From Setoptus koraiensis (Eukaryota; Animalia; Arthropoda): a DNA stretch of 64,000 bases. The notes under the pieces are model-generated. The model was not told the origin of the DNA. It did no database searches and saw only the letters and a list, made by a program, of their open reading frames with translations. This document shows positions 1-17,690 of the stretch, piece after piece (positions within the stretch are counted from its first letter, which is position 1; each line of letters opens with the position of its first letter). The stretch is taken from assembly GCA_048013815.1 (NCBI GenBank), contig CM106585.1, forward strand, positions 20,212,001 through 20,276,000. The letters are read 5' to 3'. The position numbers and the translations under genes were made by a program.

Positions 1-21
1 TCTCATGCCCACCTTTTCTGG

Positions 22-82
22 TGCTCACCTGTTCTCGCGCTCACCTGTTCTCGTGCTCACCTGTTCTGGCGCTCACCTGTTC
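22..82. repeat. 16-bp tandem repeat (GCTCACCTGTTCTCGY-like), 4 copies
   Basis: CACCTG recurs at 26, 42, 58 and 74, an exact 16-bp period. Confidence 0.9.
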
Positions 83-2502
83 GTGCGACCCACAATCAGT
101 TGTCGCTGTACTGTTTGTCTGTCATTTGGTCGTTTGTTTGTGTGTCATTGGGCCCGCAGTTGAAATTGAATTGAAACCGAGCTCGCGCTATGAAAACTGA
201 CCGCAGTGCCACTATAATGATTACACTAATGGTGAGCCGGCAGCGGCAATGACGCCCACAACGACAACAACAACACCAACAACACCGACAGCGAAAACAG
301 CAACAACAACGACAACAACAACAACAACAACAACAACAACAGCGACATCGACAGCGAGCGGCTCTGTTTCGGGGGGGGGGCACGCTCCCTGTCGGCAGAT
401 TATTGAATTGTCCGTGGGCCCCTTCATGATATGCGGTCCATATTGGCAGCACAACAAACTCGAGAGAGAGATTGCGCTCGTGTGCCGGCCACGCGCTCGC
501 GGCTGCTCGACGTGGCCGGCACACGAGCGATAGAGCAATATAGCGACCAAAATAGAAAAATGGGGCCCCAGACGGATATTTATGAGCTGCTGGCTGTTTC
601 CATTGTTGCTGTTGTTGCAACTCTGGCCAATTTACTGCTGCGCACATACTTGATAACCGGCCAACAATGGCCGGCCCGTATGGCCCCGGTGGCCCGTCCC
701 GAGCACGGTGCTACCTCGCTGTTGGACTGAATCCAAGATAAACGCACCTCAACAGAAGCCTCAAAGCGCCATGAGCGCAATATAGCGGCTGCTTAACACA
801 CCAGAACACCAGAACACCCAAACACAAAAAGTACAAAAATACGACTGCGGCCGGCGCATGGATTCAGCCGTCCGTGGGCCGCTATAACCGTTATAACCGA
901 CCGTTAAATGGTCGCTGCGTAACCTGGCGGTGGGGCCCAAAACACTTTTGGCAAGACTGGCTGTGAGCGGCACAACGAGCGACCCCGGCGGCCATTGTAG
1001 CATCATGCTATCAAGATAGTAATTGCCATCAGCCACGTACAATGTTTACACGGGCGGCCGGAGCGGTTTCGTTTTCATCATTTATCTGGGCATCTCTAGC
1101 CCAGATAAATTTGTATCTAGACTCTGCGGGTCATAGATACAAATCTGCACCTAGCGGCCATTTTGACACGTCGGCGCCATTGTGTTATCATTATTATTAT
1201 TATTATTATTACATAACGGTGTATATTTATATTTTGTATATACTCTCAGAGTATTACTCTGCTCAACGGCATCTGTCGTATAATGGACTCCAAATCCTAT
1301 TGTGCACAATGCGCACAGTCTGTATCCTGTGCATCAGCATCTACATGTCTGTATATCACACAATGCACGATGTGCTGCTCGCCGGCGCGCACATGGTGCA
1401 ACTGTGCTTGCGCCGCGAGCCTCGCGGGGCCCCAGCGGCCACTGCACTGGTAAGTTGCCAGTGGTAACTGTAGTTACCACCGGCCACCAGTTAGTAACTA
1501 GTGGTCAGTTACTGGAGTTAGTGGCCGATCCGCTGTAATAACGGGCAGTTGTGACAGAGAATCGGTGCGATATGGCAACACGATGATAATGATGATGGCA
1601 CGCCAAACTTGACAATAATTGTGTTTCGCATGCTAGATGGCGCACTGGCCGGTTGTAGTTTTTGGTCGGGCTCTGACCAAAAAACTGACCAGTGGGTGCG
1701 GACGCAAATATCCCAAGAGCACCCGATACAATTTGTATCATACAAGTGCGCCTAGGGTCGTTCGCGAGTCGCGACCTGGTGCGATAATTGCCAGCACACT
1801 GGCTGCTGCCACTGCGCGCATTGTGTCGGGGGCTCTGTATCGCTCAATGCGACGCTCTAACAAAGTGTGAGGCCCCCTCAACTTGAGACTGTCCACGCCG
1901 AGAGTGAGAGCGAGAGAGCAAAATTGGATCGGCGAATAAATTAGCATTCGCATCGAGCCGTCATCTGAGTGATTTGCGGGCGGGCGGAGCCGGTCGCCAG
2001 TTTGCGGGCGCAAGCCCGCGGAGATTCAACGATCCAGCCCGCGGAGATGGAGATTCAATGATACAATTTGGCGATGATGGCGCGACGATGGCGCGATGAG
2101 CCCGCATGAGGGGCCCGTCATGTGATCGTCATGGCATGAGCATGAGCATGCAATAATGATATTGTTACACTTAATCGCTACACACTTTTAACGCCGACCA
2201 CTGACTAACGACCCAATCACTGTCGCCCCAAACAGGATTCCAATGGGACGCGGCCGCACGTGTACACATATACAAATATAAACTGGCGCACGGGATATTT
2301 GAGGCGGGCAATTTGTTTGCAAGTGGCAGCAGCGTTGCCTCGTTGTAATTGCCGCCGGGCCGCAACTAATAATAATATTATTACATAACGGGAGAGCTTG
2401 CTGGCCACCATCGCCGGTGTTGTTATTACACGATTATGCCATATGCTGGCGTGTTTATCTTGACTGCAAACGACAAGTGGTTACCTAAGCAGTGACCCAG
2501 GC

Positions 2503-2615
2503 AACAACCGCAACAACCGCACACAACCGCAACAACCGCACACAACAACCGCATACAACAACCGCATACAACAACGCCGACGACCGCACAAAACAGCGGC
2601 AACAACCGCGCACAA
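2503..2615. repeat. Degenerate ACAACCGC(A) minisatellite
   Basis: AACCGCA at 2506, 2515, 2525, 2534, 2547 and 2560; GACCGCA at 2582. Confidence 0.8.
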
Positions 2616-3289
2616 CGACGCCAACAACAAGAGAAATAGCTTAACAAATCAATTAACGCAAGCAAACAAAAAGGAGCGCTGCAACCGCCGCCGCTTGTTC
2701 ATATTAATGAGTGCCAGCGGCCCCTTAATTGGCCGCCACTGTTACGCAATAGCAACGCCGGCAGCAGCAGCAGCAGCAAACATACGAAAGTGGAACACAC
2801 ATACAGTTGCATTATGTGTAATTCATCATAGAATGCATATATAAACTATATAACGTCAAGCGGACAGAGAGAGCAGCAGCAGCAAAGAAAGAGGAAGCGC
2901 CGCGTATTAATAAGTTGTATCAATAAGAGTTGTCGGGGGCCCATTTTCATCATCGCTTTTGGGGCCGCGCCATCATGATAATAGTGGCTCGCTGGCAACT
3001 GTAATAGCGCCTAGTTGTGTGAATAGCATATCATATTTAGGGTATTTACTGGGTCACTATGGTTTTAGTGGCCGAAGTGACGCCTCAGCGAACCCTCTGG
3101 CCCACTCTGTCGAGCTCACTGCGGCAGCTCTGTGACTGTTTGTAGCCGACTGTTGTTGGCAACAATCGGCAAGCAAAAACAACAACAACAGCAACAACAA
3201 CAACAACACAATAGTGCACGCGTTTACACGGCAACCGCCACCGTCACCGTCGTCGTCATCGTCATCATCACAGTCGAAACTCAACAATT

Positions 3290-4159
3290 ATGCTCAATAA
3301 TACATTGAATTGCCAGATAGACAACAACAGCATCAACAGCAGCGACCACAACAGCAACAGCACCAACCACAACAGCACCAACAACCACAACAGCAACAGC
3401 ACCAACCACAACAACAACATCAACAACAACCACAACAACAAAAACAACAACAGCCCCGGCGGCAGCAGAGACAAGCCAACAAGCGACAAAGATAAAAACA
3501 AGTGCAAAGACAACAACAATACAAACCTGCCACGAGCCACCACCACGACTAACGGCGCTGGGGCACCTGGCGACACAGTGAATAAAACAGATAAGGGCTC
3601 GCTCGCGAGCGCCACAGTGAGCGCCGGCTCGGCCATCAACAACATCAGTGCACAATTCAGTGGCCCGCCAGAGAGCTCGTTGCAACGACAACAACAACAA
3701 CAACAGCAACACCGACAACAGCAACAGCAACAACAACAGCAACAAAAACAACAACTACAACTACAAATAAACAAAACAACGCCGGACAACAACAGCTCGC
3801 GGTTGACAGTGGTCGTCGACGAGCCAGCGGCCAGCAGCACACACGGCGCCCAGGTGACCTCTGGCTGGAGCTTGTTGGGCCAGGTAGACCAAGATCAGAC
3901 TCGTGGCAGCGAATGGACACAGCGGGCAGCGCATCATCAGTTTAGTTTATTGGGGCCCGCCGAATCGTCGCTGGTTGTGGGGCCCGGCGCAACCAACAGC
4001 AACAAACAAGACAAGACTAGGTACGGCGACACAAATGGCGCTAAGACTGCCGTGAATAGCCAGCCCACTCCTGTCCACAACAGCAGCAACATCAACAACA
4101 ACGACAACAACAACAACAACAACATCAACAACAGCAACAGCAGCAACACCGACAACAGC

Positions 4160-4194
<35 letters not shown>

Positions 4195-7100
4195 AAACAA
4201 CAAAAACAACAACTACAACAACAACGATAACTACAACAACAACTACAACAGCGGCGCCGATAAGAGACAATTTGTTGCGTCGTCGGCCATACCGAGTTTC
4301 AGCATAGACATAGACAGTAATATATCGTCGCCATCGTTGCACAGCGACCTATGCCAAGTGAATGCGGTGCACCAGCAGCAACAGCAAAACCCGCACTGGT
4401 CATGCGATACCAGTAACACCAGGCAACCAGCGACACATCTTGCGACAACTGTGGGCGCCGGATGCGCCAACAGCCATCCAGCTAATCCCGTCGGCCTGAG
4501 CAGCGTCGGCCCGAACAGCGTCGGCCCGAAAAATACCGGCCCGAACAATATCGGCAATATAGCGGCGCTCGGGCACGCCCCAAACAAGCAGCAGCCTCAA
4601 GCGGCGACCAATATCCAACAGCTCGCGCCAGGCCCCAAGGGTCGCGTCGTATCGGCGGGCAGCGTTGGCGCCCCAGAAATTGTGACGGGCGGCCCGCCGC
4701 AAACTCACACAGCAGTCCTAGCGGCCAATAACAGTGTTAAAAATAATACAATTTTAAATAAATCAGTAGCAGCAACAGCAGCAGCAGCAGCACCGTACAG
4801 CAAATCAACGACAAACAGCTCGCTTGCGAACAACAACCCCAGCGCCCCCAACAAGAAGCCAAGCGGCCAATTGCAGGGCTGCGGGCCGCCGGCGGTCAGC
4901 TCGGCCAACACACTATCCATTTATATCAATGGTAACTATCGGTCCAATTCGATTTTTTGCAACCGTCAGGCGCCCTCGGCCAACAGTCAATCGCCGTTCA
5001 ATTCCACCACTCAGTTTATATCGTCGCTGGTCAACAATCCAAGCCGGACTATATCGTCCACCTTGCAGATAGCCAGAAACAGCAGCAACAGCAGCGCCAA
5101 CAGCAGCAAAAAGTGCCCCAAGACCAAGACAAACTCTAATGAGACCAGCAACACCAGTGACACCACCAGGCGACGCTCCACAATTGGTTCGCGCTTTAAA
5201 TCGAGCAAAATATTGCGCAATTTTAGTATTCGGGCAGGAAAATTTACTCAGCGACAACAGCAGCAGAATTGTGATGACGACGACTGTCAATTAGACCAGT
5301 CACAAGCCAACAGAACGCCATTGTCTCAGGAATCCAAGACACCCTTTTTGAGTGCCTCTACATGCTGTTCGCCGGCCGGCGATCATTCGCACCAGCAGCA
5401 GCATCAGCAGATAAATGATGACGAGCTGGACGACGAGAACGACGACGACGATCATAATCAGTCAGCAACGAGAGATAAAGACCACGAAGACACAAGTCAG
5501 CTCATCAAAAATAAACAACAACAAAGCAAACAATTGGCCGCCATCAAGGTGAGGTGCCAGCAAACGGACAACAGCACATACACGTTGCAAAGTTGTTGTG
5601 GTGATAATGATATAACTAGTCAGTATAATAATAACGAAAACAATAACAATAATAATAATAAGGATAAAATTAATTCAAATGCCACATCGCCCTATGACGA
5701 GCGCCAAGACCACGAAGACGACGATCAGTCGGACGACGATAACCAAAACGCAGCCAATCAACAACCACATCAAACTTACAAATTGAATCCCTCATCTATG
5801 TTCTTACGCAAAGCTATGCGTTATTATAGAGTATGGATCTATTGCACTAATTTGGCTATATTGTTAGGTACTATTATATTTATATTGGCCACTATTTACG
5901 TATTCTCAGATTATCGCATCAATTTAATAGTAAACAACAACGAGTCGCCGCCAGCTGACACTAACAGCAATTACAATTACATAAACAATTTTACAAAGTG
6001 GCCTCGGCTCACTTATAATTACAACGCAACAACAATAGACATCCAAACTAGTGGTGGCAGCGGCAGAAGTGCTGGCCACTACGTCGATTACAACAAGCAA
6101 CGCCATTTACCTTTTGCATTTCCAACAAACAACGTTAACCAAAATCACACCACCGCCGGTACAGAGAAAAATTCCATCGAGGCCAGTGTGGATATAAGCT
6201 ACTACGAGCCGAGCTTCATTTACGCTTACATAGCCATCACGATTCAGGCGGGACTCCTACAGGTAAGCGACACACGACTGACCCCCCCAAAAACAGATAA
6301 TACCCGTTCGAAATCGTCTACTGACCCACTGATCCATTCTGCCAGATTCGCTCTGATTTTATCTCGTATTCTCTGTCTCTGTCTCGCTACACTAATCCGT
6401 CTCGTGCTTTGTCTCACAGTCGCTCGGCTGCTTTGGGGCCATTCGCATGAAAGAGAAACTACTGCTCACATTCTGGTATCTCATACTGGCTCTCATGGTT
6501 GGCGATCTCTGCATCGGCCTCCATTGGCTATATCGATACGATATTATCACTCACGAACTGCGCCAACATCTCACCAATAGGCTCCGTTTCAATTATGGCC
6601 TAAACGTCAAATTGTCCAATTACAATCCAGTATTCGATCCAGGTCACTCATCGTCGGCCGGCATGATGATGAGCGACTCGGCGCAAAACACACAAAACAC
6701 ATTTGAGGCCAAATCAATACTAGCATTCGATGATCAAGATTATACATTAGCGGCATCGCAACCGGAAGTAGCAACGGCGTCAAAAAATCAACCAGAAAAC
6801 AGCTACGCCGAGCAGCAATTTTTGTTGCTGGATTCCATAATGATCGAGCTAATAGACAAAACTTTCACTGTAAGTAACTCAACACATTCTCACAATTCTT
6901 GTTAGTTTTAGTCTCGCCGGGACACAAACTTTTCTGTCCAAGTTTTTTTTTTCAATCGAGAAAACGGAGATATTTTCAAACTGAATTCAGATTTTTTTCA
7001 AGTGAATTTTTCACACTGTGAGTGGATTCATGAATGATTGTGTTCATCGAACCCGAGAGAGATTCCTCGTGTGCCAACGAACCTGATGAAAGACTTGTCG

Positions 7101-10100
7101 ATCGGGGTTTACGGAACCGGAAGTCATTTTCAGATTTTTCGTATCTTCACGAATCATGTCGAAATTCGTTTTTTTCTTCCAGTTTCGCGTCTCGTTCTTT
7201 CGGTTTTGTTTCAGAAAATTTACTCTAAACTTGGAACGAACGCTTTAGAAATCGCATTTTATTCAACAATTTGCTTCTTTCTGACTCAGAAATTCTGAGA
7301 CGAAGTGCCACTGACACAGCGCGCCTCTGCTTCTTGACGTGAAATTATTTTCTTAAACTTTGTTATCGCAGAACGATTTTCTTTGTCCGTTGCGAAATCA
7401 ATCAAACAAGTTGAATGATTCCAAGTGAAAGTTTCCAACTGCCGTAGTGATCGGGCACGCTAACTCATGGGGTTTTCGGCCCCCTTCAGAAGAAATAAAA
7501 TAATAAAGATATAGAAATAAAAAAATAAAGCCAAGGCCGATTTCGACCCAGTTACGGCTTGCATGGCTTGCAATTGGCCCATCGGAATTTCGATCTCTGT
7601 AGCCCTGTCTCACTAGTGTGGCGACACCTGTTCACTGATATAACCAATATAAATGACTAACCTATTACCATTACCTATATGTATTTGCATTTATTTTGTT
7701 TGTTGTTGACACATTCAGAACATTATGGATAGGATACAGAGGGAGTCGCACTGTTGCGGAATCTCCGGCCCATTCGACTACCACGATAGTGTCTGGTATA
7801 GACAGATTCAACATTACAATTACGTAACTAACAGCAGCAGCAGCAGCAGCAGCAAACAAACAGAAATGAGTGATAGCAACAATGATACGACCAGCCAACA
7901 ACGACAATTACATTTACATGATAACGTGCCAATTGTACCTGCAAGCTGTTGTCGAGTGGCCAATGTGGCGCCAATCAATCATGCAAGTGCCCACACGAGT
8001 AAATCAGCACACAATTACAACAGCAACAACAATAACGGTAACCCGTTGAGAGAGAGCGACATTAGTCTTAAATCGGCCTATATGAATTTAGTGAACGGTC
8101 ATCAGCCGTACGCCACAAAAATAGATTATAGGCAACAACAAATGCAGTTTCTGAATGCCTATTCGGACAATTCGGAGCACGCCGTGGAACAGCGTGGGCC
8201 AGCGCCCAACGATTCGGAGCGTCCAATCAGTGATACAGACAGCGATATTGTCGATGGTTTGGCCTCATCGGCGTTGCCGGCCTCCGCAACTCAGCGCCAA
8301 TATGCAAATAATGTCGCCGAGCAATCCTTGTTGGCCAGCAATAGTTACGCGCCACAACTAATGCCACAACAACAACAACAAGATGGCGACCTCGATCAGC
8401 CGATGGCCGTCAACAGCTACGAAGATTCGGCCCGATACGGAGAGCAGCATTCGGCGGCGGAAGACACTTCGGAATTGCACTTTGTCGAGACACTAGACAA
8501 TTCAGACGACAACAATAATAATGTTAATTTGTTTCCGCAAACAGAACAGGGGCACGATGCGCTCAAGTTGAGCGGGCCCCTGTCGCTGCGCCGAAAACAA
8601 CTGGAGAGCCACCGAAAATACAAGAGGCACCACGAGGCGGCGGCCGAAAATGGTCCCGACGACGACCACAATGACGACAATGATAAGTCCGACGGCAATG
8701 ATAACTTTGACAACGACAACGATAATTCCGACAACGACCAGGCCGGCCCGGCCGCGAGGAGGTGCGCCGCTGTAGAAGACGCGGCCTCGCTTCAAGTGGC
8801 GGCCCGCTGCAGCGACGAGCCCGGCCCGAGAGAGGGCGCGCACCGGCCGTCGGCGGGCGGCCTGTTCAACGGAAGCGCCTTCTATTGGCCCAACCAGTAT
8901 CAGCTGAACCTGAGACAGTATCAATTGCTCACCTATTACGATCGCCAAATGGAGAGGAAATCGGCGGCGAAGAGGCGAAAACGACGGGGCCACAACCGAC
9001 GACGGGCGAACAACGGGCACGAGGCAGCAAGAGAAGAGGCAGCGTCGGCGCAGAAATTGGGGCCCGGGCGGAAGTTGCGATTGGCGCGGTACGCGCCGGA
9101 CAGCAAGCAAGCGGTGGCGGCCGTTAGTCGGCAGCAGCAACAGCCGGCCGCCATTGTGACCCTGCGACTGCAGCCACCTCAGCGGCAACCACAACAACCA
9201 CAACCACATCAGCAACAACAGCAGCAACAACAGCAGCAACAGCAGCAACCACAGCAACCGCGCCAAAGACAGCGGGCCGGCCCGACCGACCGCACGGTGG
9301 ACGTTTGCCTGCCGAGAAGCTACACGGACAAACAGTCCATTTACGTGCGCGGCTGCCACAGGCACATTCAGGCCTGGCTAACGACTTCCGCTAATATTAT
9401 GCTAATTACGGGCTTTTGTGTGCTGACATTCTTGAAATTGTGCTCGGTGTGTTTGTTGCGCTACGAGATACACGAGATGATAAGAAAAATCAAAGTGCTC
9501 AAAGGCATGGCCACCGAATACAATGCCCTACACGATCTAGAGGCCTACCTACCCCGTCCCTCGATTTGTGCTCAAGCGGCCGAGCTGACGCCCAGCGGCG
9601 TTGCGCCGGCCGGTTCCGGTGGCGCGGTTGGCGCGGGCGGCCCGTGCCCAACAGTGCCGACAGGCTCAACAGGCATGGGTGCGGCTCAACAGACCGGCAC
9701 CGGTGGTCCGTGCGGCGCCGTGCCCACATCGTCGGGTCTTGCCACCCTGGGCAGTTCCACTTCGAGCTGCGCCACCAAGGCCATGGCGGCGCTGTTGTCG
9801 CCGACGGTGCACCAACAGCAGCAACAGCAACCATTTATGTCGCGCAACCATTATTCATCCACCTCAAATTCGCACCATTCGTCGGGGGCGCCCTTTTTGC
9901 CGCCCTATCACAATTACCCAATGTCCAACATGATATCTAGGCGTCACACCGCGGTGTCGGTGTGCCCGTCGGTGGCGAGTGCCGCCGCCGCTGCAGCAGC
10001 CAATCACTTTATGTCGCGCCGGGGCACCTTCGTGAATCCCATGTCGGCCCTGCAATCGCATCCGCTGTTGGGCAGCGGCAGCAGCGCCGGCGGCGCCGGC

Positions 10101-10676
10101 CACGCCTGCTGCTCCGTTCTGGCCGGAGCGGCCGGTCAGTCGGCCGCGACCCTCCATCACGCTCATCATCATCATCATCAGCAGCATTCTTCGTCGTGTT
10201 CGTCGCAACAACACATCAACCATTTGGCGGACGGCGCGGGCCTGTGCGGCGGAAACTCCGTGGGCGTGGGCGGCGGCGGCGGCGGTCTGGGCGCAAGTAG
10301 CAGCAGCAGCATATTGTACAACAGTGCCACCAGGCTGACAAACAGCCATCAGACGCTGCTGCTGAATGCCAGCGGTCAATTGCACAACCCGGCCGCGCCA
10401 ACGCCCCCGCTGACAACAACCTCGACACAATTGGCTTGTGCCCGAGCTAGATCGTCTTCGCAATTGTTAGTTCCGTCTACGGCCGCGTCCATAATTGTCA
10501 ATCACTTTCAAGCGCAACTGCAGCACCACAAACAGAAGCATACGCTGTCGCAAACCACAATTGACCACCGCCAGACCAGTGCAAACAACAAATCATCGCA
10601 ACGTGCCTCAACCACAAGCCAACAACCGCCGAAGGACAGCAGCGCCATTGGTCAGCAGCATGATCAAATCAACTGA
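3290..10676 (+). CDS. Giant tetraspanin-family protein, 3 exons: 3290-6262, 6420-6869, 7719-10676 (about 2,126 aa; start uncertain)
   Basis: Phase-0 junctions CAG|GTAAGC (6262), CACAG|TCG (6420), ACT|GTAAGT (6869) and TTCAG|AAC (7719) join three ORFs in frame. TM1 is VWIYCTNLAILLGTIIFILATIYVF; TM2/TM3 span FIYAYIAITIQAGLLQ-SLGCFGAIR..LLLTFWYLILALMVGDLCIGLHW. The tetraspanin CCG motif is at 7752-7760, PASCC at 7938-7952 and YVRGC at about 9343-9356, followed by TM4 IMLITGFCVLTFLKLCSVCLL. Confidence 0.85.
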
Positions 10677-12556
10677 CTCGCTCGGTCAGTCACATTAAAC
10701 ACTGATTACAATGTACAATACAATTACAACGGACTGACCAGGTCGGATAATGAATAAATAAATGAAAAGGACCATTTATTGACGTGAACTGATTGTCACA
10801 ATTGTTGTTTATTCGCTCGTTTTGGCGTTTCATGGCTCTGCGGTTCGACTGTCGCCGTTGCAGTTTGACAGCCCGAATCTAACGGTCACTGTCCAGCCCG
10901 GCGACTACCGGCGAGCCGGACGGCCGGCCGATTGAGCCAATCGAGCCAATTGAGCCGATGCCAGCTATTTAGGTGACGCAATCAATCCAGCCTAAGCGTT
11001 TGCCAAGTCGCGCTCGCTAAGTCGTTAGACGTGTCGCTTGTTACGAGCGCGCTCAGTGGCCCCCTCGCCTGTCTGTCATTTCATCAATCACTGCCAATGA
11101 CTCGAATTGGACTCGAATCTGGCTGTGTGAGTGGATGGCGCATTGCGTTGGGTTCGCTGGCTAGGTTAATTGGAGGTTGGCTGCGATTGTGTTAGCAAAC
11201 TTTGCCAAGCAAAGGAAACGGGGCGAGCAGAGACAGCTTTTATCCGTTCGCTGTTGGAGTGAGTTGGCCGTTTGAGTGAGCTCGCTGTGTGTATGCATGT
11301 GTGTCACGACTAATACGTAACGACTAAGATAAAGGGATAAAACGAGTGACGGGGGAGCCTTCGTTTGCACACAATGCAACAGAGCGATGTGTGCTTCGGA
11401 GGATCGAAATTTCTAGGCGATATGTTGTTTTAGTTAAACGCTAAGGCTGTTTTGTTACTGTTGCACCATTTAAAAATGTACCCATTCATTCGTGTGTATG
11501 CATAAGAACATTAATTAGGAATGCCTCGCCTGTGTCTTGGCACACACAAAACGAGTTGAGACGGCATCTATTTCGAATGGCGACAGAGAGGGAGATGGCA
11601 GCGTCGCCAGCCAGCCAGTCAGCCATTTGCGATTTCAATATCAAGCGAAGTGACTGACTAAATAGTAATCCTTGCTTGTTATCCAAATGATAAAAAATGT
11701 ACGCCACATGGGTGTACGTATAATAATATGATATATATGTGACACATGAGTCGAGTATGAGAGGAATATTTTCAAGTATTTGCCATGACAAGCCATGTAC
11801 GCAGCAAACACGCTAGAGATTGGCGCTAATGTAATAGCTGCGAATTGGAGCTCGATGGGGTGGGGATCCGAGCGAGGGCATAGAGGCGCCAGCGGCGCCG
11901 GAATGAGTCACTGATAATGGAGGCCATCGTTCATCTCGCTGAGGCTGTTATGATGTCGTTTAGCTGTTAGCTCGTATCAAATTATTATTATTATTGCTTG
12001 TAATGCTGCTTGTTTTTTAATTATCATCATTCATCATAACAAATTCGTGCGACTTCTCGATAGTTAGCAAACGGAGTGAATTGGTAGACTCAAATAGTAA
12101 CAACTGCAACAAAGATACAGATCAGCAAACGAAAGTGACTGAACAGAGCACAGTCGGCAACAATTAAAAGCAATCAATAATCCATAGTTCACCAGTTCAG
12201 TAAAATCAGCCAATTTGCATATTCGTTCGCCAAGAAAATAGTAAGAAGAAATAAGTAAGTAATTCAATAATTGTCATTGTTGTCGCTGGCAGTGCTGTTG
12301 TCGTCAAATAATGCAGGAGCAGCGCGAGCGGGCAAAGGCAAAATAATAAGAATAAGAAGAAACAATGAGTTCAATTGAAGACGAAAGACAAGCAACAAGA
12401 AAGAAGAACGTCGCCAATCGGATCAGCAACGGCTCAAGCAATGGCTCACTTCCGGCGGCGCCCGCCGTTTTCGCGCGCGCGCGCGCCCCCATTTGCCGGC
12501 GGTGCGGCCGGGCAATGAGTGGCCGTCGCCGGCGAACAGTGGCGGCGGTGGTTTAG

Positions 12557-12614
12557 CGCGTCCATCGCGTTTATCGCGTTCATCGCGTTCATCGCGACTA
12601 TTGCGTTTATCGGA
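12557..12614. repeat. 9-bp tandem repeat (ATCGCGTTY-like), about 5-6 degenerate copies
   Basis: Sequence reads catcgcgtttatcgcgttcatcgcgttcatcgcgactattgcgtttatcgg. Confidence 0.7.
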
Positions 12615-14646
12615 GTGCCTATCGAGGGCCACTTGTGCGGCTTCCCTAATTGACCGATTGCTCAATATTTAGCATACTATCAACGCATACCATAGAGCAT
12701 AACATAACTGCAATATTATGGTTGCGTAATAGTTGGCGCAAATTGATTTGCGCCAACTATTACATAATACCAATCGATTAGGAGCACCGACCGAAGCGAA
12801 TGGCCGCCAAACTTATCCGAGTGCATCATCGCATTACTAACACCGCATTCATTTATCCGCTGTCCTGAGCCACCATGTTTACAATGTTGTTGTTCGCGGT
12901 GCAGCGTGGCCAAGACCGCCCGGTGCCCGTGCGCAAATAACTCGAATCGTTGGCCGTGAATCACGACGACACGACACGAATCGCTTCGCTTCAGTAGGTA
13001 CCGCTACATCATTTGAGTCAATTATTTGTGCCAGCCATTTTGCTGGCATATGACAATATTATACACATATATTCTCTGCACTAGGCCCGCAGAGATTGTC
13101 CGATGAAAATGTTGCAATGTTAATTATGTGACGCAATATGCATGTTTTATGCATGTTACATGCATGCAGCCTGCATATCCTGAATTTGAGAGTTTGTTGA
13201 GTTCAGTTTGTGCGACTGTTTGTCGCCATTTAGCCAAGTCGCAATTGCTGAGTGTGTGTGTGCGCTTGACATGGGATTTATTTGCATTAAATAAGCAATT
13301 AGATTCGACAGATGTATTTGTTGTTGCTGCAATGTTGCCGCAACGCAGCGCATAGGGTCCCTGGATCGACAAGCCGCGCGCCGTCGCGACCCTATGCGCC
13401 CCCGCGCGCGCAATTGCCGCCCGCCAGTTGCTCAGCCAACGGCAAACAGTCGGAGCAACTAGTAAACCAAACATCTAGTGAGCATCGACATGAAGCAGAC
13501 ACACGATATCCCAGCGACATATCTCACACACGGCCCCCCATTTGAGCGCCATCAGTGAGCGGCGGCATGATGAACAATATTTGCAAAACCTTTGCAAACT
13601 TTTGCATGCCACAATCTCATTCCTGGGCGCTGAGACTGCAGTCGCAGCAATAGGAGAATGAGTGTGTGTCGAAAATAATTTCACACAATCTCTGCTGCAA
13701 CGAATAGCTGGCTGGCTGGCTAACTTTTGAAACTGAATGATGTGAAAATTCAGTGAAATTGAAAATTTGCATTCGCTCGCAACACAAACACAATCTTGTA
13801 GCGGCAGTTTACAAGTTTACAAGTGAAGTGGCGAATTTGGGGCGTTGTCGCCCCAAGTCACAGCATCCCTCAATAGTTGTTTGTTTGTGTTGTCCCATGT
13901 GCCAAATGACAACCAACAGTAGGCAAAGTGATTAATTTACTGTGTGTGTGTGTGTGTGTGCCATTCGCTGCTGATGCCATCGCCAAACAAACCTACAGAC
14001 TATTAGTCGCTAGAAGCGGTAATATTTGCAGTCGCTAGTTACAACTCGCGACAGCCGCAGCAACGGCAACATCGAGCGGCTCGATCATTGCGAATCATTG
14101 AGTCACTTCTCTAGCGCTTCTTTTCCTCTTCGTCTTCGTTCTCGTCTTCGTCGTCTTGCCTTTGCCTGTGTCGTCTAGCCACCAATCTTGTCAACGAATG
14201 CTCTGCGTATCGTCGTGATAAAACGATGACACATGCATGGCAGCTTACGCACGACGCAAAGTATCGATCTTAGCGGGCCTCTTTAGTCTCTCTATCTCTC
14301 TGTCTTGCTCTTGCTCTGTGCCTTCAGCTCGATCTTATCCACATCGATAATTTGACATATGCCCAATCTGCCATCCAATCCGAGCTCTCTATTCACCAGG
14401 CCGCAGTTATATTTGTTTGTATATGGTTATATAATTAAAGTTACATCTCACTCACGCTCTCCGCAGCGATGACTAATCAATGCCAAAGAATACATGTCCC
14501 TGCCGAAGAATAATACATGTAGACGTAATAAAACTGCTGCAACGACAACATCACCACAGACATAGACAGCATCAAACAGACAAATAGACACCACGCAAAC
14601 AACTTGAGAGGTCTAATCTTGTTATTTTATTTATTGAATAAATCTT

Positions 14647-15374
14647 ATGCTATTTGCAAGACCATTTAGTAGGATGGCCTCACCAAAGATAACATGCCAT
14701 GGAGCCGGTTTAGTGGCAGGTGACGCCGGCAGAAAGAATAATTTCACTGTGTTCGTCCAACAAGGAAAAATTGGCGGAATATCAGTCGCATTCGAGGGTA
14801 ATTATGACACACCTTACAATACACACACACAATATCATAAAAACTTGTGATGAACTTGATTTAGCTCATCATTCAACTTAACTGATAAACAAACTGTTAA
14901 AACCATTCACACTCCGTTCATACAGGACCATCCAAGCCAGAAATCACATTCAAAGACAACAAAGACAACAGCGTTGAGGTCACCTATGTGCCCAAGGTGG
15001 GCGGCGACTACAAGATACATGTCAGCTATGAGGACAAACCAGTTAAGGGATCGCCATTTTACTTGAAGATCACCGGCAATGCTGAAAATACCAAAAAATT
15101 AGTGGAAAAGATCAGCTGCTCTGGTGAGGCGCTCAGTCAGGGCAAAGTTGGTACTGTTAACGAGGTCACTGTCAACTGTAAAGACGCTGGTATCACCGGT
15201 GGTCTCAGTATCGCCATGGAGGGTCCAAGCAAGCCAGAGGTTTCTTTCGAAGATAACAAAGATGGCACATTGAGGGTCAAGTACAAGCCACAACAAGCTG
15301 GAAAGTATCGTCTTCATTTGAAATTTGGCGAATTCTCAGTACCAGGCTCGCCATACAACATTACAGTATCCTAA
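14647..15374 (+). CDS. Small filamin/ABP280-repeat protein with two Ig-like repeats; exons 14647-14797 and 14926-15374 (ATG 14674 is an alternative start)
   Basis: Phase-1 intron GAGG|GTAATT...TACAG|GA restores SVAFEGPSKPEITFKDNKDNSVEVTYVPKVGGDYKIHVSYEDKPVKGSPF. Second repeat is SIAMEGPSKPEVSFEDNKDGTLRVKYKPQQAGKYRLHLKFGEFSVPGSPY. In-frame TGA lies upstream at 14635. Confidence 0.85.
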
Positions 15375-15630
15375 ATGATGTTTTTCAAGTGCCTCTGTCG
15401 TCTTCTATAATTAGTCGTTCGTTATCATTTATATTGTTATTATCACCATTATTATATTTGTTGTTTTGTGCAACACTAACAATTGTGAACACCACGAACA
15501 ATCAAGTCAATCCTCATCGGTAATGTGCCTATGTAAAACAAAAGCAAAAATAAAACAACTACAACATAATAAATCAACTGATGATGACAATTTGACGTGT
15601 TGAGCTTGCCTACGATTATTATTAAATGTA

Positions 15631-16044
15631 TTAAATAAAGAATGTGTGCTTGTTTTTAACACCACGATCCTCATCAACAAGATGCTTTTGCTCTTTCTTT
15701 CTTCTTTGTCTTTTCCGTAACAATGTTTCGTTGTAGTTCCTACATAGTTGCTCTTTACCTAACAGTTGACGTTCCTTATCTGGTGTGAGTTCGTCCTTTG
15801 GCAATTCATAATGTACACCGTCTACCAGACGTGAATTGATCATGTGGAAAACAAATTCATTGGGATTTCTATCTAAGGCTTTGTTCTTAAGCTGCTTGAT
15901 TCTCGTTTCTTTGGCATGATGATCTTCGGCTCTTTTCTTATAATCTTTCTTCTTTTCCAAGTAGCCCAATTTCTGTCTGTGTTTCGGTTGTCTCCTCTCT
16001 TTGTGTATCCGCCGAGCTAATTTATCTGCCTTCTTGAAAGACAT
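15631..16044 (-). CDS. UTP11: U3 snoRNA-associated protein 11 (short form, 137 aa)
   Basis: R.HKER.QP..R.KLGYLEKKKDYKKRA.D and KALDRNPNEFVFHMINS match the UTP11 N-terminal signature. Confidence 0.85.
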   Translation of the reverse strand: MSFKKADKLARRIHKERRQPKHRQKLGYLEKKKDYKKRAEDHHAKETRIKQLKNKALDRNPNEFVFHMINSRLVDGVHYELPKDELTPDKERQLLGKEQLCRNYNETLLRKRQRRKKEQKHLVDEDRGVKNKHTFFI

Positions 16045-16364
16045 TGCGCCGCCTTAAAAAAAGGATTTGTTACTGTTCAATAAATTAGGTTTAGCCTCAG
16101 TTAGATGAAGATAAAACTATCCCATGGACCATTGGTATTTTGCCAAATGATATTCCATTCGAGTCCACGTGCAATAACAAAATCAATTCGACGATGTGCG
16201 CGAAATTCAAAGAATCTTAAAATTTCCTAGACATTATTCGACATGTGTTGGGCGCGTGGGTCCATTGCAATTATAATATCGCCAGACTGTTTATGGACGA
16301 GGAACAACACATGTCGACTCATGTTGCCATTTTATATTGGATTACATAATTATTATATGTCGCC
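16045..16364. promoter_or_regulatory. Putative bidirectional promoter between UTP11 and AlaRS
   Basis: Only 320 bp separate the divergent start codons; inferred from geometry alone. Confidence 0.5.
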
Positions 16365-17690
16365 ATGGCGGGGGTCAGGCTGTCACACCGACTGAGACTT
16401 CAATTTATCGATTATTTCGTCAAGGAACATGGACACGAACACATTAGATACAGTTCTGTGATACCGGAAAAGGATCGGTCAATCGAATTTGTTAATGCTG
16501 GCATGAATCAATTCAAGCAGTTGTTTTTAAACGACGCCGGACAGAACCAATTATTGAAGAGGGCTTGCAACTATCAGAAATGCATCAGAGTTGGTGGCAA
16601 ATTGTGCGATATTAATACCGTTGGACGAGACTTCAGGCACCATACGTTCTTCGAGATGTTAGGCAACTGGTCATTTGATGATTATGGTAAGGAGGAGGCT
16701 TGTCGATGGGCCTGGCAATATCTCACCGAACATCTCAAGTTGAAGAAAGAGCGTCTGTTTGTTACTTACTTTGGAGGATTAACCAAAGATGAAAGTGATA
16801 CAGAGACCAGAGGTATATGGTCCCGGTTAGGATTGGACGCTGAACGTATCATCGAGAATAGACAAGGCGACAACTTTTGGGAAATGGGCTCAACTGGGCC
16901 ATGTGGTAAATCTACAGAAATTTTTTATCTAATTGAACCCTGTGGGCGAGATATAACTCAGCAAAACATTGATAACTCATTAGAGATTTGGAATATAGTT
17001 TTTGTCAATCAAAGACGACTTGAGAATGGTGATCTTATAGATTTAAATAGAAAATTCATAGACACTGGTATGGGTTTGGAAAGGATAACGAGTGTGGCTC
17101 AAAATGTTAGCTCCAATTACGACACAGACCTATTCAAGCCTCTATTTGACATAATTCAACAAAAGACCGATTGTAAACCGTATTCTGGCTCAGAGAAAAA
17201 CGAATTGGATATCAACTATCGGATAATAACTGATCATGCCAGAATGATGACCATTAGCCTGGCAGATGGTCTAGAACCTGGCAGAAGAGGTGCAGCAAAC
17301 GATCTGCGTAAGGTGATAAAGAGATCTTTCTGGATAGCTGAGAATGCATTTAAATCAAACCGGGCCAAATATCTTATGTTCGATCTAGTCGATGGTGTAG
17401 TTGAAACGCTAAAAGATGCCTATCCAGAGTTGGTGTCTAGAGTCTCCCATATCCGACGGACTTTGCAGAGAGAGTATGTCAGATTCGAGTCGAATAATCA
17501 AATCATAGAAGACAGATTTCTAAGTCTAGTAGATGCTGAACCAAAGCACAACAGGATATTTGATAGCAAACTGGCCTATTTGCTCTATAAGGAGAACGGT
17601 GCTTCATTGGAACAAATTGATAGTTTATGTAAAAAGTATAACAAGTTAGTTGATTGGGAAGCCTTCGAAGTGTGCAGGTCGAGTGCTTGA
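16365..17690 (+). CDS. AARS2: Alanine--tRNA ligase, aminoacylation module only (441 aa), probably mitochondrial type
   Basis: Motifs NAGMNQFK, QKCIRVGGK, HHTFFEMLGNWSF, NFWEMGSTGPCG, EIWNIVF, IDTGMGLERI and YRIITDHAR. Stop at 17690 is followed by AATAAA at 17697. The mitochondrial assignment is inference. Confidence 0.8.
   Translation: MAGVRLSHRLRLQFIDYFVKEHGHEHIRYSSVIPEKDRSIEFVNAGMNQFKQLFLNDAGQNQLLKRACNYQKCIRVGGKLCDINTVGRDFRHHTFFEMLGNWSFDDYGKEEACRWAWQYLTEHLKLKKERLFVTYFGGLTKDESDTETRGIWSRLGLDAERIIENRQGDNFWEMGSTGPCGKSTEIFYLIEPCGRDITQQNIDNSLEIWNIVFVNQRRLENGDLIDLNRKFIDTGMGLERITSVAQNVSSNYDTDLFKPLFDIIQQKTDCKPYSGSEKNELDINYRIITDHARMMTISLADGLEPGRRGAANDLRKVIKRSFWIAENAFKSNRAKYLMFDLVDGVVETLKDAYPELVSRVSHIRRTLQREYVRFESNNQIIEDRFLSLVDAEPKHNRIFDSKLAYLLYKENGASLEQIDSLCKKYNKLVDWEAFEVCRSSA

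Follow-up and report, generated by a model that had tools for sequence, protein, structure and literature searches.

Tetraspanins are typically proteins of 200–350 amino acids (aa) with short tails; they are regarded as compact, their tiny tails and small first extracellular loop (EC1) limiting binding. CD53, TSPAN15, TSPAN10, CD63, and TSPAN7, for example, span 219–355 aa, and their tails comprise anything from a few residues to a few dozen, while peripherin-2 and ROM1 possess a disordered C-terminal tail (C-tail) that is functional. Here, we describe a gene of the mite Setoptus koraiensis that appears to encode a far larger member of this family. We analyzed a stretch of 64,000 nucleotides (nt), hereafter called the window, taken from assembly GCA_048013815.1 (contig CM106585.1, positions 20,212,001 to 20,276,000 of the forward strand); the gene occupies positions 3290–10676 of the window on the + strand. 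Our favored reading, to which we assign a probability of roughly 0.7, is that this gene model is real and belongs to the tetraspanin family, the product being a tetraspanin scaffold whose tails and loops have been inflated by repeat slippage and carry conserved islands. The published S. koraiensis genome consists of two chromosomes, with an N50 of 24.53 Mb (PMC11920263).

Gene Model and Tetraspanin Core

Between positions 3290 and 10676, three long open stretches translate without stops into 991 + 150 + 985 = 2,126 codons. A first-pass annotation, made from the letters of the window, had proposed three phase-0 exons, and this structure is confirmed, with introns of the GT..AG type (Table 1). 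An in-frame stop is found upstream of the first ATG, at 3212–3214. Frame +1 is free of stops in all segments of the model; in the other five frames, segments of 70–280 codons contain as many as 28 stops each, and a stop-free case was encountered among them in one frame of one segment only. If stops arose at the rate seen in frames +2 and +3 (3.3–5.4%), exon 1 would be open with a probability below 1e-14. Both GC and A content vary periodically with codon position across the whole gene model, and no GTAAG donor was found inside the exons, for a window-wide rate of 0.58 per kb.

Junctions 6262/6420 and 6869/7719, as placed by the first-pass annotation, use canonical sites and are both supported by relatives. 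At the first one, the spliced window sequence is colinear with the intron-less open frames of 13 relatives (alignment A3); intron 1 is missing from all 13 and from L023, a 51-kb metagenome contig (Ga0058701_10000187), and their frames cross QAG.LQAIGCFGAIRMKE unbroken. Intron 1 may be a lineage-specific gain, or it may have been lost repeatedly elsewhere; the clade is known for intron loss. At the second junction, the same 13 relatives, which are predictions of the open reading frame (ORF) style, all terminate right past ..DKI(L/F)T-VS, i.e., they read through the GTAAGT donor, and locus L021 carries ACT/GTAAGT at this very point; the position of intron 2 is, thus, conserved. With its 849 nt, intron 2 is long for an intron-poor genome (the L021 counterpart measures about 94 nt), and no homologous exon is missing. 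An Rfam scan of window positions 1–16500, intron 2 included, gave no match.

The translated protein displays the four transmembrane (TM) helices of a tetraspanin. Hydropathy places TM1 at about aa 848–872, TM2 across junction 1, TM3 at aa 13–38 of exon 2, and TM4 at aa 554–581 of exon 3, and the motifs of the second extracellular loop (EC2) begin at nt 7752 (CCG), 7938 (PASCC), and 9351 (GC), in agreement with the earlier proposal of a four-TM scaffold with CCG, PxSCC, and GC motifs. The computed region sizes also match those given at that stage (about 845, 100, 670, and 405 aa), with about 847 aa for the N-terminal tail (N-tail), 102 for EC1, 665 for EC2, and 404 for the C-tail. Basic residues, read from the translations, border the cytoplasmic sides of the TM helices; the inner loop between TM2 and TM3 is very short, and both ends of the protein would be cytoplasmic. 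The size is the feature that departs from a typical tetraspanin: at 2,126 aa, of which 847 form the N-tail and 404 the C-tail, the protein is six- to tenfold larger than usual.

Family membership is supported by profiles and by conserved residues. A Pfam search, which the first-pass annotation had suggested, matched PF00335 on exons 2 and 3: exon 3 alone scored 34.7 bits, above the cut-off of 32.1, and exon 2 scored 20.5 bits; relatives reached 41–92 bits with the same model. NCBIfam yielded a chance-level match only, and single-exon queries against the sequences of the Protein Data Bank found only CD53, CD81, and Sm-TSP-2, at E values of about 0.2. A family profile built from 24 short members and compared with solved structures found CD53 best (1.9e-14), then TSPAN15, TSPAN10, CD63, and TSPAN7. 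The six EC2 cysteines are present in 23 of the 24 family members, and the Gly-Asp of TM3 and the Cys near TM4 are invariant or nearly so in alignment A2; the juxtamembrane cysteines are putative palmitoylation sites. Finally, the gene is single-copy in the genome of the window, the segment following TM4 being found once.

Relatives and Subfamily

We searched for relatives in a space of 1.84 billion proteins. Exon 2, used as the query of a full HMMER search, yielded 140 hits (best 72.9 bits), many of them long, with TM2/TM3 far from the N-terminus; among the named ones are a “Tetraspanin” of the mite Fragariocoptes setiger (1,283 aa) and proteins of Anopheles, Pediculus, Microplitis, Bemisia, and Ischnura, of which nearly all bear the label “uncharacterized”. 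A word-index search with the whole of exon 3 gave nothing at E ≤ 0.001, low-complexity words having saturated its 8,000 candidates under a narrow length filter. A further search starting from the Pediculus protein revealed a clade spanning insects, crustaceans, and a sea spider, mostly labelled “uncharacterized”. The remaining annotations are inconsistent (“Tetraspanin 5D”, “CD63 antigen”, “CD82-like”, “CD37-like”).

In order to compare region lengths, we took the four TM blocks as anchors in 153 complete members. Their medians are 519 aa in total, 68 for the N-tail, 16 for EC1, 147 for EC2, and 168 for the C-tail, so that long tails are already present across the family. An EC1 longer than 40 aa is restricted to a mite-like subgroup (47–135 aa, versus 15–21 aa elsewhere), whose largest members are close in size to the window protein (Table 2). 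Only P0014 and P0145 are longer than the latter among the 153, and the window N-tail is the longest of all.

The metagenomes were scanned twice: the first scan, with P0014 as the query, found nothing, and the second, with an alignment of conserved blocks, found loci. On contig L023, the locus of the metagenome proteins P0014/P0145, a relative of 2,266 aa, the largest member seen, lies in one open frame (4796–11596, +) holding all the motifs in order, starting with RSNSIF (aa 280) and ending with RRSIH (aa 2262). Loci L021 and L022 are 100% identical over their shared 1,804 nt of the gene and, for this reason, give no ratio of nonsynonymous to synonymous substitution rates (dN/dS).

Our literature searches on long or giant tetraspanins and on eriophyoid tetraspanins found nothing relevant. 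The first-pass annotation named orthologues of similar size, if already described, as a refutation; we found no paper describing any, but proteins of 2,248/2,266 aa and of 1,283 aa (F. setiger) are already in the databases.

Table 2. Region lengths (aa) of the window protein and of its full-length mite-like relatives; P0016 and P0058 are Logan proteins.
Protein	Total	N-tail	EC1	EC2	C-tail
P0058	1,050	191	47	339	365
P0007 (F. setiger)	1,283	422	59	368	326
P0016	1,336	236	105	557	330
Window gene	2,126	847	102	665	404
P0014	2,248	536	135	990	479
P0145	2,266	554	135	990	479

Conserved Islands and Expanded Regions

The tails and loops of the mite-like proteins combine short conserved islands with long stretches that cannot be aligned. 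Five ordered islands, namely RSxSIF, KLNPSS, KVLKG..YNAL..YLPRPS, RRHTAVS, and RRGT, are all found at their expected places, and are common to the window gene, P0007, P0014, P0016, and P0058; the pattern RS.S[ILV]F is shared by 21 mite-like proteins. The conserved segment preceding TM1 begins with YKLNPSS (aa 830–836), 7 codons upstream of Met837. Over aa 829–991 of exon 1, identity to relatives is 37–45% where the whole stretch aligns and 60–81% for the part before TM1 and TM1 itself. Outside the conserved islands, blastp with SEG masking gave no alignment between relatives.

The expansions have a low-complexity fraction of 0.44–0.49, most neighboring ORFs being at 0–21%, and they hold CAA/ACA/CAG-type arrays. 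Repeats of the CAACAACCGCA type and (CAA)n repeats are also seen in non-coding DNA directly upstream of the start (2480–2640 and 3174–3208), and are of the same type as those of the coding expansions rich in N, Q, T, and H. Such inflation may not be peculiar to this gene: in a 264-kb sample (the window and loci L001–L020), 8 of the 38 open frames of at least 300 codons have a low-complexity fraction of at least 0.3, and the Hr38 ORF of the window reaches 0.43, an indication that coding sequences of this genome are commonly inflated in this way.

We predicted the structure of exons 1 and 3 with AlphaFold2 (AF2), each exon being folded separately with its relatives as the alignment (the two alignments had 5 and 14 rows). 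The predicted local distance difference test (pLDDT) is below 50 for 876 of the 991 residues of exon 1 and for 826 of the 985 of exon 3, including the main EC2 insert except for aa ~398–443. The confident parts are limited to TM1, TM2, TM4 and the helix that follows it, a polyglutamine (polyQ) helix in the N-tail, and the helix at exon-3 aa 398–443. Short helices are predicted at exon-3 aa 2–39 with a pLDDT of 51–66; one has to remember that exon 3 was folded alone and that EC2 is split over exons 2 and 3. An RRKR cluster (8973–8984, exon-3 aa 419–422) sits within the confident EC2 helix. Dibasic runs occur in the wider EC2 insert of relatives, and the RRKR shape is that of a putative furin-type site in an extracellular loop.

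Should the expansions be seen as adaptive modules, EC2 would serve outside the cell as a brush, for adhesion, or for spacing, and the tails would act as hubs that form condensates, with selection on length and composition. Expansion does recur at the same four sites in every mite-like relative, the long EC1 being found only there; the WPN island of EC2 is conserved and has a confident helix, the extra cysteines of the EC2 insert are even in number, and the expansions are kept in a streamlined genome. This view, however, has to accommodate sequences that are unalignable between relatives outside the islands, lengths that vary several-fold (339–990 aa for EC2, 191–847 aa for the N-tail), a composition of the trinucleotide-slippage type, and similar low-complexity inflation in unrelated genes of the genome; we consider it unlikely.

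Translation of the Expansions

The first-pass annotation took the frame that stays open through all the expansions as a sign that they are translated, and this interpretation is strengthened by the islands, by the stop-free character of one frame, and by the single frame of L023. Indeed, the 2,248/2,266-aa pair lies in one open frame, so giant loops need no splicing there. Exon 1 contains Met codons at aa 1, 837, and 843 only, and conserved sequence is found upstream of the last two; translation should, therefore, start at Met1 or in an unseen upstream exon. A short start at Met837 (5798, MFLRKAM) was considered and rejected, as the conserved YKLNPSS and RSNSIF islands lie upstream of it. Taken as a whole, the comparative evidence favors translation of the expansions.

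Several points nevertheless weigh against our reading of a real, slippage-inflated tetraspanin. The gene model is known from genome sequence alone, and the article describing the genome mentions no RNA-seq (PMC11920263). No conserved anchor exists for the first ~325 aa of the N-tail, whose support comes from the open frame and from the absence of another Met. One GTGAGC is present in exon 1, at 3617, and weak or non-consensus introns may exist. The window gene has lost three motifs that relatives have kept (an RRQST-like motif, LRRIAS, and the terminal RRSIH), so that motif use may differ here; an RRSIH-like ending was not found downstream of the stop codon in any forward frame. The kinase-site reading of the tail motifs, discussed below, is drawn from their shape (RRxS/T, RxxS). 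Lastly, the AF2 runs used shallow alignments and took each exon by itself, and disorder of the expansions is, for this reason, supported rather than shown.

The first three of these points are those that an over-extended gene model would explain, in which the N-terminal few hundred codons would be an untranslated leader or cryptic in-frame introns would trim the expansions; the N-tails of relatives, at 191–554 aa, offer no counterpart to the first ~325 aa, and CAA-type repeats also occur in the adjoining upstream non-coding DNA. Such a model would nonetheless leave 543 stop-free codons ahead of the first strongly conserved island, with about 3% stops in the other forward frames; the next Met after aa 1 is at aa 837, yet the motifs at aa 544–557 and 830–836 must be translated; GTAAG is absent from the exons, and one relative encodes a version just as large with its frame uninterrupted. 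We judge over-extension quite improbable.

The lost motifs and the weak Pfam scores (20–35 bits) might also bring to mind a decaying or non-functional tetraspanin copy, kept open by its repeat composition alone. This is the sole copy of the genome, however, with core motifs, cysteines, and splice sites all intact and a TM4 block 68–72% identical to relatives, and its non-repetitive stretches are likewise stop-free in one frame only, which makes decay highly improbable. A pseudogene was rejected on the frame-specific absence of stops and on the single-copy status.

Proposed Explanation and Significance

According to our favored reading, this single-copy gene of an eriophyoid (gall) mite encodes a genuine tetraspanin with a canonical core which, judging from family membership, would act as a membrane scaffold grouping partner proteins. 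All four insertion-tolerant sites (the N-tail, EC1, the variable part of EC2, and the C-tail) are inflated with low-complexity sequence, predicted to be largely disordered, which we infer to have grown by slippage of CAA/CAG/AAC-type repeats. These spacers would be translated and would evolve almost freely, close to neutrality, with selection keeping short islands: the cytoplasmic flanks of TM1 and TM4, tail sites of the basophilic-kinase type, and one helical island in EC2. RSNSIF, RRHTAVS, and RRGT here, as well as RRQST, LRRIAS, and RRSIH in relatives, are candidate kinase or docking sites. The cytoplasmic flanks of TM1 and TM4 being the best-conserved parts, a conserved intracellular partner may exist; and, since selection seems to retain short motif islands, the tails are most likely long flexible tethers presenting phospho-regulated docking motifs.

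One could go further and propose a lineage-wide process by which gall mites inflate the proteins of a drastically streamlined genome several-fold with translated disordered inserts at structurally permissive sites, co-opted in this case as very long phospho-regulated cytoplasmic tethers and as an extracellular spacer surrounding a conserved helical island. If true, the largest tetraspanins known would be a functionally new kind of membrane scaffold, but this is a tentative proposal that we would not expect to hold. No new mechanism is revealed, and the expansions are mostly low-complexity sequence. The locus is still instructive in several respects: together with its relatives, it shows that the four-TM scaffold tolerates an EC1 of about 100 aa, an EC2 of 665–990 aa, and tails of 400–850 aa while short motifs stay conserved, the expansion sites marking permissive positions of the tetraspanin fold; it defines an unstudied pan-arthropod subfamily, mosquito members included; and it provides a clean, comparatively supported example for the paradox that proteins are inflated in an animal genome which is among the smallest.

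Features of the Locus and Neighboring Genes

The features of the gene are listed in Table 1. Two ORFs further downstream in the window were also considered. A basic ORF of 137 aa (15631–16044, −), which we take to be UTP11-like, is 58% identical to an ORF of L023 (14583–15041, +), the two being in opposite orientations. In the window as in L023, this UTP11-like ORF is located downstream of the tetraspanin gene, at a distance of a few kb, and such partial synteny supports orthology. The other ORF (14988–15374, +; 128 aa) resembles filamin-type immunoglobulin repeats, with the endings GSPF...ITG and GSPY...ITV, and probably represents a single exon from a larger gene.

Table 1. Features of the giant tetraspanin gene, in window coordinates.
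Feature	Position	Strand	Evidence
Exon 1: N-tail, TM1, EC1, first part of TM2	3290..6262	+	991 codons, no in-frame stop
Cytoplasmic N-tail, ~847 aa, rich in N/S/Q/T	3290..5830	+	N 17%, S 13%, Q 10%; CAA/ACA-type tandem arrays
N-tail island IYING..RSNSIFC (RxxS type), aa 544–557	4919..4960	+	Nearly invariant, 13 relatives, alignment A3
Pre-TM1 segment, YKLNPSS then MFLRKAMRYYR	5777..5830	+	Columns Y830–Y851 mostly invariant in A3
TM1 with conserved Asn and juxtamembrane Cys	5831..5905	+	Hydropathy; N854 invariant, C852 nearly invariant
EC1, ~102 aa (family median 16)	5906..6211	+	40–45% to P0003, P0006, P0016; AF2 pLDDT <50
Intron 1, phase 0, 157 nt	6263..6419	+	GTAAGC...CACAG
Exon 2: end of TM2, short inner loop, TM3 (6456–6533), start of EC2	6420..6869	+	PF00335, 20.5 bits
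Intron 2, phase 0, 849 nt	6870..7718	+	GTAAGT...TTCAG
Exon 3: remaining EC2, TM4, C-tail, stop codon	7719..10676	+	985 codons without stop; PF00335, 34.7 bits
CCG-to-PASCC segment of EC2	7752..7952	+	C12, C13, C77, C78 invariant
Main EC2 insert, ~450 aa	7953..9305	+	Acidic N/D run, basic RRKRR cluster, polyQ, two extra Cys
EC2 island (Y/R)WPN..LN..YQ, then predicted long helix	8880..9047	+	Alignment A1; helix 398–443, pLDDT 84–90
C..PRSY...RGC, final two conserved EC2 cysteines	9306..9356	+	C530, C546 invariant
TM4	9378..9461	+	Hydropathy; pLDDT 88–93
Most conserved cytoplasmic segment, helix past TM4, KVLKGMATEYNALHDLEAYLPRPS	9462..9608	+	72% to P0016, 68% to F. setiger
C-tail motif RRHTAVS	9939..9959	+	Invariant in A1; 5/5 full-length mite-like relatives
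C-tail motif RRGT (RRGTF)	10017..10028	+	Motif comparison with relatives
AATAAA polyadenylation-type signal	10753..10762	+	~80 nt past stop codon 10674–10676; direct reading

Comparison with Known Tetraspanins

With human CD53 and the like, the window protein shares the four-TM family and the CCG/PxxC cysteine framework, a similarity that is at the level of the family. Peripherin-2 and ROM1, for which the profile gave weak matches (2.5e-6 and 1e-4), likewise tolerate an enlarged EC2 and a working C-tail; their enlargement, however, is a modest and folded one, for a total of about 350 aa, and they are not close relatives. A link to the C6a tetraspanins (Drosophila Tsp5D, TSPAN4, TSPAN9, and C. 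elegans TSP-21) is an annotation lead, given by one Carabus protein called “Tetraspanin 5D” and by the six-Cys pattern; Tsp5D was grouped with TSPAN4/9 in PMC4433240.

The pan-arthropod clade includes, for example, XP_052867947.1 of Anopheles cruzii (910 aa) and E0VFW9 of Pediculus (607 aa): the TM blocks are 35–55% identical, its members share the six cysteines of EC2, and their C-tail is likewise long, with a median of 168 aa, whereas EC1 is 15–21 aa, EC2 is mostly 83–270 aa, and the mite tail motifs are absent. Among eriophyoid mites, the F. setiger protein KAG9509420.1/A0ABQ7S7M9 (P0007), annotated as “Tetraspanin” and for which we found no paper discussing it, is 81% identical over the pre-TM1/TM1 segment and 68% over the TM4 block, and has the RSxSIF, KLNPSS, RRHTAVS, and RRG motifs in common with the window protein; it is, however, about 840 aa shorter, and its EC1 reaches just 59 aa.

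The closest in build are P0014 and P0145, where RSNSIF, KLNPSS, GCFGA, CCG, PxxCC, WPN, GC, KVLKG, RRHT, and RRGT follow one another as in the window, the same four sites are expanded, the TM4 block is 57% identical, and a UTP11-like gene lies nearby. They differ in being intron-less, in having a shorter N-tail and a longer EC2, and in keeping the RRQST-like N-tail motif and the terminal RRSIH, both of which are missing from the window gene. Because such relatives of similar build and size exist, the S. koraiensis gene is not a one-off; it is an extreme member of an existing, undescribed pan-arthropod subfamily of tetraspanins.

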